From the NCBI GenBank assembly GCA_015680685.1, contig MNCI01001197.1, forward strand, positions 249,272-313,271: a DNA stretch of 64,000 bases, in the 5' to 3' direction. This document shows, in pieces, positions 8,795-11,952 of this stretch (position 1 is its first letter; each line of letters begins with the position of its first letter). A model generated the notes under the pieces. The model worked only from the letters and a program-made list of their open reading frames with translations. It did not search any database and was not told the origin of the DNA. Origin of the DNA: Gnetum montanum (Eukaryota > Plantae > Gnetophyta). The position numbers and the translations under genes are program-made.

Positions 8795-9285
8795 TATTGG
8801 CACATTTGGCCACTTCATGGAGCAGGTTGGCAGGATTAAATTGGTTAAGAGTTTTTGGAGAAGTGGCTAAAATTTCAGTTTGAAAGGAAAAGAATAAGTT
8901 AACAACAACATTCTCTTAATTTAAGGAATAAATATATAGGAGCACCATTCCTATAGTAAGCTTATGAATCTCTGAGCAATGCATTTTACAAGGCAGCAAT
9001 ATAGATATATAAATATATTATGATACACTGGGCTTTACGGAACCAAAGTCTAGCAAGATTATGGAGGAAGTCCAATTTTTACATGTATCATTTATATGAT
9101 ATGAATATGTAGCAAATCAAAGAGCATCTCAAGTAAATCTGGTTTTGTATCCATTTTATTTTGGAAAAGCATATCTTTGCAACAACACAAATTCAGCAGT
9201 CTAGTGGTGCAGGGTAAAATTATTTTTGCACTGATTAAACAGGAACATTGCAATTCATATTGTTAAATGGTTGAATGCGGTCAAT

Positions 9286-9507
9286 GTTAATCTTTCCTTC
9301 AACAATTTTGATGGGAACTAGTCAAAATCCTTGGGAAACAAGCTTACACAGCTGGAGAACATGGGTCTTTCTCATAACAAGATTACGGGTCCTATTCCAG
9401 AGTCTTTGTCCAACCTTACTTTTCTTCAGGTTTTAAATTTATCATTTAACAACTTTGAAGGCAACGTCAACTTTTCTGAAGGCTCTCTCCGAAGATTGAA
9501 AAATTAA
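9286..9507 (+). pseudogene. Captured plant extracellular-LRR (RLK/RLP) fragment
   Basis: VNLSFNNFDGN*SKSLGNKLTQLENMGLSHNKITGPIPESLSNLTFLQVLNLSFNNFEGNV, matching the plant LRR consensus LxxLxLSxNxLxGxIPxxLxxL. Confidence 0.9.
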
Positions 9508-9615
9508 TCATTCGTGCACAAATCCTACATGACTGCAAGCAAACCGAACATGAACAAAAGTAATCTGATTGGGTTGAAGAGCTTCCAGTCCATTCCCAAT
9601 CATGGCATTCTAGAC
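9508..9615 (-). pseudogene. Captured PLS-class PPR fragment with internal deletions
   Basis: [34 protein letters not shown] vs consensus SWNAMI..GxGxEAL..PNxITFVxVLSACSHAGLVDE. Confidence 0.85.
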
Positions 9616-9647
9616 AATCAAATTTTTACCAGGGCAGTAGGAGTGAC

Positions 9648-9761
9648 AAAATCGTCGACCGCGTAGTGCTTATTGTGGCGCAACCGGGCACTAGGAAAAC
9701 TGCCATCACCATGGGCATGGCCAAGTCCCTAGGCGACAAAACCCCCTTTACCATGAACGCA
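9648..9761 (+). pseudogene. RUVBL2: Captured RuvB-like 2 (TIP49b/RVB2) Walker A fragment
   Basis: [38 protein letters not shown] vs recalled RuvBL2 [36 protein letters not shown]. Confidence 0.88.
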
Positions 9762-10152
9762 GCAGTGAGAGATGAGAAAAATTAAAACCCTCATAAACAC
9801 ATAGAAACAGAGTCATGTTTCGTTGAAACCCCAATCTCATTACCAAATTTGCTTGATAATATCAGCGCATCTTCATCAAATTAAACTACCCCCTTCTCCA
9901 ACACTACCACTACATTAGCGAGCTCTTGTTCTGTGCGGTAGTCCATGATGTGCAGCTGAGGAGTGATTGCATCGTCGTCATGCCATCAAACCCTACTGGC
10001 CTCTACTTTGTTTCATGAATTTCATCGGCAATGCGCGGGAATACATTTTGGTTGCTACGTTTTGGTTCCATCTCATTGCTTGAACAACTTCCTAACGTGT
10101 AGATTCGAAGGGGTGTAACAACTTTTAGTTATCACTAGATGATTTTTAAAAG

Positions 10153-10239
10153 GGTTTTGATGCAGATACCATTATTAGAACTGCTTCGATTAAAATGCAT
10201 TCCAAATGCAGGGATATGTACGAAGTTAGGAAACTACTT
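10153..10239 (+). pseudogene. PLS-class PPR fragment inside the 3' LTR
   Basis: GFDADTIIRTASIKMHSKCRDMYEVRKLL; same fragment as 213-299. Confidence 0.7.
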
Positions 10240-11952
10240 TCAGAGAAGACTTTGTAATGGTGAACCTGCAAATAACCTTATCAAAAATAGCAGTAGTGCC
10301 CGACGTCGATGCATTTTTTATTGCCATACCAATCCACTGAACATGGCAACAGAGACATGAAGGCACAATAAGATAGGTGTACAACCAAATCAGCAGAACT
10401 AGGAGATGTTTTAGTCGATGCCGATAAATCAGAGTTGTAGTTTATTCATCATTGAAGACAAATACAAAACTCGAATGCATGAAATTGGAGTTACAAAAAT
10501 AAAATTTTAATTTCACATGGTCTGGTGGTCAAAATATAATTTTGGCAATTTCTCACATACGATAATGGTTAATTTAATTATCCCAAGTGAATTACTAAGG
10601 CTTTATACACAATGGGAAATTAAAAATCCTAAAATAAAAATTGAATGAAGCTCTCATAAGATTAAGGTCTTAAATTTATTTTTCAAAAATTATTGTATAG
10701 GTTGTTGCCTATAAAATATTTGTAATATTTACAAATGTCAATGTTAGCATAAGTTCCTCCTAATTTTTTGTATAACTTCCTAACTAGATNTGGATATTAG
10801 GGACTACTAGCACACACTTAAGGTCACACATTGTGAAAGATTGCTTGTAAGATGACTGGCTAAAGAAAAGATTTCAGCCTCTTTGTCATAGTCCTATGAG
10901 TTATGTTTTATTTTTATTTTGTTTAAATTGTTTAGCTAGTGGTTTAGATAGTATCATGCTTGGCTAGTAGTTTTTGGATTTTTAGATTGCTCTTTTTGTT
11001 CTCGTTGCATAATAGAAGATTTCTATTAAAATTTTGCCATAGAAGCGCTTGTGTTCGAAACCCTTAAGAGCATTTTAGTAGTAAATTTTATTATTGTGCA
11101 ATCTATAAGAACCAATATTGATATTATTGTAAGAGAGCCTTTGCTTGTAGTCATGTCGTTGAACGATCCAATAGTCAAGAGGGTTCAAAAAATCTTTGGT
11201 ATTTTGATGGGACCAGAATAGCTTCTTTTATCTTTAAAGTGAATCTCCGTGGTATTTCAATCAAAAATTGTCAAGTCTTTTGAAGGTTCTATTGAATGCA
11301 ATTGTTGACATCCATTATATAGCCAAATGAAGTCTCGTACGTGATAGTTTACGCAACATTTTTTGGTAGCATACTAGGATTATCTTGAAAAAATTGCTTA
11401 TTTAAGCCTTGGAAGTTTGAACAATTCGTAGTTATTGAATTTGGGATAGCTTTATTATGAAGTTTTTACTCATATCATTTTACCTTTTTTAAACATTTAA
11501 GATCCTAACACAAATCTGCTTTCTTTCCTTTCTATTTCCATTGAATCTTGCTTTATTTCTAGTTTTCTTGTGGAACTATCTCTTTCTCTGGGGAAAATTA
11601 GAAGTAGATTCAGGGAGTTGTGCTCAAATGTTTTTCCAGAATTTTATTTGTTACAAGTAGGTATTATAAGGACTGCGTAGACTAGGCAATTGAACAAAAT
11701 AGGAACTTCCAACAACTCACAGTACTTGGCAAAGTTGGCTGAATCTCTTTAAGATAAGTCATTTATAGTTTACACACAACGCCATCATTTCATTTTTCAC
11801 AACAACACACTGCAAAATCACACACACATACTCACATTAACTACTGAGTCTATTTGGAGGTATCTGGGCCTTGGTGTTGCCAGAGACCAGCAAGCACCTA
11901 AATCCTATTCAAGGACACTCGTTGGTGGTCGCATCTCAAACGGTCACCAACA

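Follow-up and report, generated by a model that had tools for sequence, protein, structure and literature searches.

The question raised by this locus is whether an LTR retrotransposon has gathered fragments of unrelated host genes within its LTR, or carries them elsewhere. In a 64,000-nucleotide stretch of Gnetum montanum DNA (contig MNCI01001197.1, positions 249,272 to 313,271; hereafter the window), a sequence-only reading had placed four such fragments in the U3 end of an LTR and proposed that the LTR works as a serial capture cassette. Our analysis favors, with a probability of about 60%, a different account, in which positions 11-11949 are a single old, decayed Ty3/gypsy retrotransposon of the Tat lineage that carries a 480-bp mosaic of three of the pieces as inert cargo upstream of its 3′ LTR, outside U3.

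The element is a member of Ty3/gypsy, Tat lineage, with an additional RNase H that precedes the reverse transcriptase (RT), which is the commonest such form in gymnosperms. Pfam matches, all on the forward strand, occur in the order gag (2372-3310; Retrotrans_gag, E 2.7e-13), additional archaeal-type RNase H (aRH; 4327-4809; RVT_3, E 1.6e-09), RT (4867-6012; RVT_1, E 2.2e-32), native RNase H (RH; 6088-6570; RT_RNaseH_2, E 1.6e-20) and integrase (6934-7890; rve, together with tblastn of matched integrases onto the window). When 120 related integrases were compared with the window by tblastn, homology stopped at 7884-7893. Placement of aRH upstream of RT corresponds to Tat 'structure #2' (PMC10508981), which the present element resembles in its order of gag, aRH, RT, RH and integrase. 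It differs in that Pfam detected no protease domain in the element, no clear PBS or PPT was found in it, and even its best integrase matches in the protein collection reach no more than 40-48% identity. Tat/Ogre elements characteristically have large LTRs and, 3′ of pol, a long non-coding stretch, and both traits are present here.

All four host-gene pieces proved to be real and to lie at or near the places first proposed for them, as judged by Pfam, PDB and protein matches, and translations bear out the near-abutting layout and mixed orientation of the first three. The leftmost (9283-9504, forward strand) encodes about 2.6 leucine-rich repeats (LRRs) of the plant extracellular type; it matches Pfam LRR_1, LRR_4 and LRR_8 as well as the ectodomains of plant LRR receptors such as FLS2, GSO1, MIK2 and BRI1, and is interrupted by one in-frame stop at 9319-9321. 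A PLS-class PPR piece follows on the reverse strand at 9508 to about 9633, where it matches a synthetic PPR-DYW protein (E 9.5e-07); its confirmed core is 9511-9609, and the extension to about 9633 was made by eye from the translation. The third piece, on the forward strand from about 9630 to 9761, derives from RuvBL2 and covers positions 44-84 of the Pfam TIP49 profile (E 1.7e-08). PDB chains of RuvB-like 2 match it at E values of 1.6e-10 to 3.7e-09, compared with about 1e-04 for RuvBL1, and tblastn with plant-like RuvBL2 proteins aligns 9639-9761 at 63-66% amino acid identity. It retains only a degenerate Walker A motif, AQPGTRKT. The GTGAGAG that stands directly 3′ of the piece hints at an exon end; a candidate splice acceptor at its start (ttttaccag) was dropped, as coding sequence runs on at that point in two other plant contigs, L001 and L002. 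The junctions among the three pieces fall within about 3 nt, making a compact, butt-joined mosaic of 480 bp that ends 190 bp upstream of the TG that opens the 3′ LTR. The fourth piece, again of the PLS-PPR class and on the forward strand, is located at 10150-10254 in the U3 of the 3′ LTR (PLS9-PPR match, E 7.6e-11). A Pfam search of 57 stop-free segments of 8604-11960 found no further gene pieces. The broad claim that unrelated host genes have left decayed fragments in a retrotransposon is thus upheld, with host-gene sequence both between and inside the LTRs.

Which of these pieces belong to the LTR depends on where the LTR begins. Self-BLAST and MAFFT alignment define a direct repeat on the forward strand, 11-2243 (5′ LTR) versus 9951-11949 (3′ LTR), with 92.7% identity (K2P 0.078) and TG...CA ends; LTR size is about 2.0-2.2 kb, with about 130 bp absent from the 3′ copy at a single-N join at 10790. 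A TATA-like CTATAAAAAGG near 973-985 of the 5′ LTR sets its U3 at roughly 11-1000. Since the LTR repeat begins at 9951 and integrase homology ends near 7890, the LRR, reverse-strand PPR and RuvBL2 pieces lie outside the 3′ LTR, in a non-coding stretch of about 2 kb between integrase and LTR and 190-670 bp upstream of the TG start. The forward-strand PPR piece is the only one of the four that is truly LTR-borne: tblastn with the 3′ copy finds it again in the U3 of the 5′ LTR (210-311, forward strand) at 91% amino acid identity, and the proposal that it was copied with the LTR therefore stands. The other three lie upstream of the repeat start, and their description as U3 sequence within about 1 kb after a PPT is not confirmed; the 5′ LTR starts at 11 and leaves them internal, an outcome that the sequence-only reading had itself named as contrary to its model. 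With the limits taken from alignment, only one of the four pieces is left in the proposed U3 capture cassette.

The limit of the 3′ LTR is nevertheless rather uncertain, because only 10 bases precede the 5′ LTR within the window, no polypurine tract adjoins 9951 (there is no purine run of at least 9 nt within 1 kb upstream) and the two 5-bp flanks match poorly as a target-site duplication (CAAAT and ACAAG, 2/5 in register or 3/5 with a 1-nt shift). These features would suit an LTR of about 3.15 kb that starts near 8799 after the PPT-like AAAGGGGGCAGAAA, with the 5′ LTR truncated or interrupted at 10/11 and all four pieces in U3. A purine run containing G5 does occur at 8783-8797 and is followed by TG, and in a TE-rich genome windows commonly begin within an LTR. 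We nonetheless consider the longer LTR unlikely. Homology between the LTRs begins exactly at the TG dinucleotide (11/9951), and positions 1-10 agree with 9941-9950 at 3/10 sites, as against about 9/10 expected were the LTR longer. The run at 8783-8797, which had served as the original landmark, is interrupted by a C and is not distinctive: ten uninterrupted purine runs of at least 9 nt are present in 7980-8900, some of them followed by TG (for example, 8120-8130). On the forward strand, 7980-9282 is a non-coding region with many purine runs and no recognizable homology in Pfam and Atlas searches; ORFs in 7980-8603 gave no Pfam matches, and the Atlas search returned no usable match for 8370-8603. 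The 190-bp spacer between mosaic and LTR (9762-9950) contains no polypurine tract on the forward strand, and GGAGAAGGGGG is found on its reverse strand at 9889-9899.

Two further explanations of the mosaic were weighed. A number of short gene fragments that differ in orientation is typical of Pack-MULEs, and the mosaic could on that resemblance be a separate mobile element (Pack-MULE, other Pack-TIR element or Helitron) that entered the retrotransposon after the latter had inserted. An exact 10-bp direct repeat, TAGTCCATGA, is present at 8601-8610 and 9939-9948; its length is within the range of MULE target-site duplications, and 2 nt lie between its second copy and the LTR. Two further direct repeats that match exactly over 10 bp are present in the same 2 kb, however, showing that such repeats arise by chance, and no TIR was found inside the TAGTCCATGA repeat, where the best local score was 22 compared with 19.7 ± 2.5 for shuffles. 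Around the mosaic no TIRs flanked by a 9-11-bp target-site duplication were detected, a systematic search for TIRs plus target-site duplications gave only three trivial 2-bp cases, and neither strand of 7980-10100 has the end expected of a Helitron, namely a 3′ hairpin with CTRR after it and an A^T insertion site. A nested element is therefore very improbable. An assembly chimera, in which the contig 7980-10789 comes from another locus or another family copy and was scaffolded onto this pol, is also improbable, if somewhat less so. The link between mosaic and pol rests on scaffolding across a 61-N gap (7919-7979) that separates the pol contig from the one in which the mosaic lies and the 3′ LTR begins. 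The scaffold was built from short reads, single-N joins at 1268 and 12025 carry duplicated overlaps of 78 bp and 71 bp, and the join at 10790 has its missing segment. Against this, the mosaic and the LTR start share one gap-free contig, 7980-10789, so that the junction between them lies inside it; the LTRs have the order and orientation of a complete element; and decayed gene pieces offer no common k-mers on which an assembler would join.

If the mosaic is internal cargo of a single old element, as we favor, the age of its parts bears on how it was acquired. From the 63-66% amino acid identity to conserved RuvBL2 we arrive at a rough estimate of about 0.18 substitutions per site for the RuvBL2 piece, whereas each LTR has diverged by about 0.04 per site since insertion. 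By this comparison, the piece looks several times older than the present insertion. Decayed RuvBL2 pieces are also found with unrelated flanks in other plant contigs (L001 and L002), and a P0127-like RuvBL2 piece is present in 18 Logan/ENA contigs. The L001 piece has the same right-hand end point as the piece in the window and shares with it three changes (GCC>GTC, GGC>GAC and GCC>ACC). These could be of parallel origin, since all three are transitions in contexts that read as CpG- or CHG-like. The Gly-to-Arg change in Walker A seen in the window and in L001 was rejected as a sign of common ancestry, since the Arg codon is AGG in one and CGC in the other. Protein searches for family copies returned no matches to the junction-spanning ORF (9564-9782) or to the LRR piece.

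We propose that the pieces of the mosaic were joined as DNA, by template switching or filler-type repair, or that the mosaic was acquired once in ready-made form, and that its source may have been old, already degenerate pseudogene pieces scattered through the genome. Piece-by-piece collection from live genes by the LTR is not favored; nothing was found in support of serial or polar capture, and the pieces are butt-joined and old-looking. It is about equally likely that the mosaic was already present when this copy inserted, as family cargo, and that it was patched in later. A bolder possibility, to which we give little credence, is that the genome recurrently assembles gene pieces of 100-250 bp, with alternating orientation, into butt-joined patchworks in retrotransposon 3′ regions and LTRs, perhaps by template switching onto both strands of dsRNA or onto short DNA fragments, in which case the mosaic would be family cargo. 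No function is evident. The suggestion that the fragments shield the promoter from silencing or yield trans-acting siRNAs fared poorly: no inverted repeat or hairpin involves the gene pieces, Rfam has no match in 1-12200, and protein identity of the RuvBL2 piece to functional RuvBL2 is only about 65%. In a 23-species survey whose methylation data came from Platycladus orientalis alone, TEs with captured fragments gained no methylation benefit in that species (PMC13477047).

Capture of gene fragments by LTR elements has precedents, an earlier plant example being Bs1 of maize. In gymnosperms, the number of gene fragments captured by TEs averages about 400,000 per genome, with two or more present in only 13.7% of host TEs (PMC13477047). 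The present case resembles the LTR-retrotransposon captures of that survey in its short, exon-sized host-gene pieces inside a Ty3/gypsy element, its more than one donor gene, the decay of the pieces and the presence of one of them in both LTRs; it is unlike them in having three pieces, oriented +/−/+, butt-joined over 480 bp. Captures by LTR retrotransposons in rice and sorghum (Wang 2006; Jiang & Ramachandran 2013) are among the work cited in PMC13317346, a review that covers Pack-type elements as well. Simple switching of reverse transcriptase onto mRNA fits poorly with the antisense PPR piece. Filler-DNA patchworks arise from double-strand-break repair in plants, and both these and Pack-MULEs resemble the mosaic in their directly abutting 100-250-bp pieces of unrelated genes in mixed orientation, although the mosaic, unlike Pack-MULEs, has neither TIRs nor a convincing target-site duplication.

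The tight +/−/+ butt-joining of the pieces and the hint that old pseudogene fragments were re-used provide no evidence of a new mechanism or function. Passive gene-fragment cargo of the present kind has already been amply documented in the genomes of gymnosperms, and this locus adds one more retrotransposon with decayed host-gene pieces; little changes as a result. What is useful is the correction of position, in which the limits of an LTR are taken from LTR-LTR alignment and not from a PPT-like motif.

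The four gene-derived pieces that the sequence-only reading placed in U3 of a 3′ LTR are all real, as matches to Pfam, PDB and plant proteins demonstrate. The RuvBL2 piece (+, 9639-9761), with 63-66% amino acid identity to plant-like RuvBL2 proteins and a Walker A motif that reads AQPGTRKT, matches Pfam TIP49 (E = 1.7e-08) and PDB RuvB-like 2 chains (E = 1.6e-10 to 3.7e-09; RuvBL1, ~1e-04). The LRR piece (+, 9283-9504), consisting of ~2.6 repeats with one in-frame stop, matches Pfam LRR_1/4/8 and plant receptor ectodomains; its identity as a plant LRR ectodomain holds, but it is not assignable specifically to an immune receptor, because there is little sequence and the best matches include FLS2 as well as developmental receptors. 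The two PPR pieces represent different parts of the motif: PPR(-) matches a PPR-DYW protein (E = 9.5e-07), and PPR(+) (10150-10254) matches a PLS-PPR (E = 7.6e-11) and, as proposed, recurs in the 5′ LTR (210-311, 91% amino acid identity). LRR similarity stops at 9504, PPR(-) similarity starts at 9508 and reaches ~9633 by eye, reading KNLIV*NAMI in place of the usual RNVVSWNAMI, and the RuvBL2 piece starts at ~9630-9639, so that these three pieces abut directly. Searches of 8604-11960 and 7980-8603 revealed no additional protein-like sequence.

Self-comparison of the window defined a single long direct repeat, 11-2243 versus 9951-11949, which opens with TG (TGTAGCTGAGG / TGCAGCTGAGG), closes with CA and has a poor target-site duplication (CAAAT versus ACAAG). 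Global alignment of this LTR pair gives 92.7% identity (110 transitions, 36 transversions; K2P 0.078) which amounts to ~18 My at the conifer rate of 2.2e-9 substitutions per site per year. A TATA-like box lies near 973-985 of the 5′ LTR. Pfam domains between the repeats, all on the plus strand, comprise gag (2372-3310), an additional RVT_3-type RNase H (4327-4809) upstream of RT (4867-6012), RNase H (6088-6570) and integrase (from 6934), and 3314-4021 yielded no protease domain. The 120 related integrases, Pinus taeda and Taxus entries among them, reach 40-48% identity at best, and their alignments to the window stop at 7884-7893. An additional RNase H preceding RT corresponds to Tat 'structure #2', the most abundant form in gymnosperms and present also in clubmosses (PMC10508981), and a gymnosperm host is therefore probable. 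Elsewhere in the window, dense direct and inverted self-matches (73-94% identity) at 53240-55670 look like a satellite or complex tandem array, 12243-17461 and 29422-38483 hold opposite-orientation copies of another repeat family (~74-76% identical), an LTR-like tandem lies at 29966-33583, and a further repeat pair occupies 43508-44288 and 48634-49437.

The three-piece mosaic ends before position 9951, where the repeat begins, and is absent from the visible part of the 5′ LTR, and positions 1-10 match 9941-9950 at only 3 of 10 sites, against ~9 of 10 expected. From the repeat start and this mismatch, the LRR, PPR(-) and RuvBL2 pieces are placed in a ~2-kb stretch between the integrase end and the 3′ LTR, and we estimate a probability of about 0.6 that the mosaic is internal; PPR(+) is the only piece in U3. 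Tat/Ogre elements usually have a long non-coding stretch in their 3′ part. The tract at 8783-8797, taken previously as the PPT marking the LTR start, is not a distinctive landmark, since 7980-8900 contains ten uninterrupted purine runs of at least 9 nt, some likewise followed by TG. An LTR long enough to include the mosaic nevertheless gains some weight from the poor target-site duplication and from the lack of a polypurine tract next to 9951, and the visible left flank of the 5′ LTR is limited to 10 bases; set against the mismatch at 1-10, we consider it unlikely. The G-rich purine tract closest to 9951, a canonical-looking polypurine tract GGAGAAGGGGG at 9889-9899, is 50 nt away from the LTR start and antisense to the element, and could be a remnant of a different, reversely oriented retrotransposon.

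An assembly artifact also has to be weighed, as the sequence is a short-read scaffold and the mosaic is connected to pol by scaffolding across a 61-N gap (7919-7979). The mosaic does share one gap-free contig with the initial 840 bp of the 3′ LTR, and mis-assembly appears improbable. Single-N joins at 1268 and 12025 carry duplicated overlaps of 78 bp and 71 bp, the join at 10790 lacks ~130 bp of LTR, and the apparent 71-bp tandem repeat at 11955-12095 probably reflects overlapping contig ends that were not merged. The sequence that immediately follows the gap (7983-8051), with its AAAAAGAAGGAAA purine run, G7 run and TATAAAAAG box, resembles a remnant of an LTR or promoter. A nested DNA transposon, such as a Helitron or Pack-MULE, might be suspected from an exact 10-bp direct repeat, TAGTCCATGA, at 8601-8610 and 9939-9948, which flanks 8611-9938 and whose second copy stops 2 nt short of the 3′ LTR. 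This repeat is probably due to chance because the same 2 kb holds two other exact 10-bp direct repeats; no terminal inverted repeat was found within the pair, a systematic TIR plus TSD scan gave nothing meaningful, and no Helitron-type 3′ end was found, making this reading very improbable.

The RuvBL2 piece is a left-truncated pseudo-fragment with 34-37% amino acid change. Because RuvBL2 is very conserved, this corresponds by rough estimate to neutral decay of ~0.18 substitutions per site; as per-LTR divergence since insertion is ~0.04 per site, the piece was old by the time of this insertion. Used as a query against 1.84 billion representative proteins, it retrieved mostly short proteins, among them P0127, a decayed RuvBL2 fragment. 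The 90% cluster of P0127 comprises three proteins and is found on JGI, Logan and ENA contigs, with 18 contigs for one of the three. P0127 is encoded on L001, a plant contig of a JGI metagenome; the piece there (+) matches TIP49 profile positions 22-86 and is followed ~300 bp downstream by an ORF (+) with an RNase III domain, Dicer-like by eye. This region of L001 (1078-5215), which also has a VQ-motif ORF (-), might represent a second mosaic of gene fragments, or the RuvBL2 piece could sit inside an intron. The stretch common to L001 and the window is just 105 nt (78% identity), and the two pieces have the same end point (...TPF) and three nucleotide changes in common. Common descent seems likely from these features, short of proof because the shared changes are transitions at sites read as methylation-prone. 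A second plant contig, L002, carries a longer RuvBL2 copy (411-858; aa 8-167) that lacks introns, contains stop codons and a small deletion, and looks like a processed pseudogene. Whichever descent holds, old pseudo-fragments derived from this RuvBL2 region occur at dispersed sites.

Inserts gained when reverse transcriptase switches onto mRNAs are expected in sense orientation, and two other routes fit better because a PPR piece is antisense, the abutting is exact and at least one piece is old. We give roughly even odds to a DNA-level patchwork, in which filler or template-switch repair would have used existing pseudo-fragments as templates. A one-time capture of a transcript in which the pieces were already joined is a more doubtful possibility, and serial capture by the element, as originally envisaged, is hard to credit. 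A change beside the LTR after insertion, to which the missing PPT points, is about as likely as a mosaic that the element already carried.

Proposed roles for the fragments in shielding the promoter or producing trans-acting siRNAs found no support: self-comparison of the window revealed no inverted repeats involving the pieces, the PPR pieces derive from different motif parts, and there were no Rfam family matches in 1-12200. In Platycladus orientalis, TEs with captured fragments are reported to have no methylation advantage (PMC13477047). Gene-fragment capture by LTR retrotransposons has long been known (reviewed in PMC13317346), and gymnosperms are reported to carry ~400,000 captured fragments per genome, with at least two fragments in 13.7% of host TEs and a preference for first and second exons (PMC13477047). 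Against this background the locus is one more case of gymnosperm TE capture, and the tight joining of pieces in mixed orientation is all that sets it apart.
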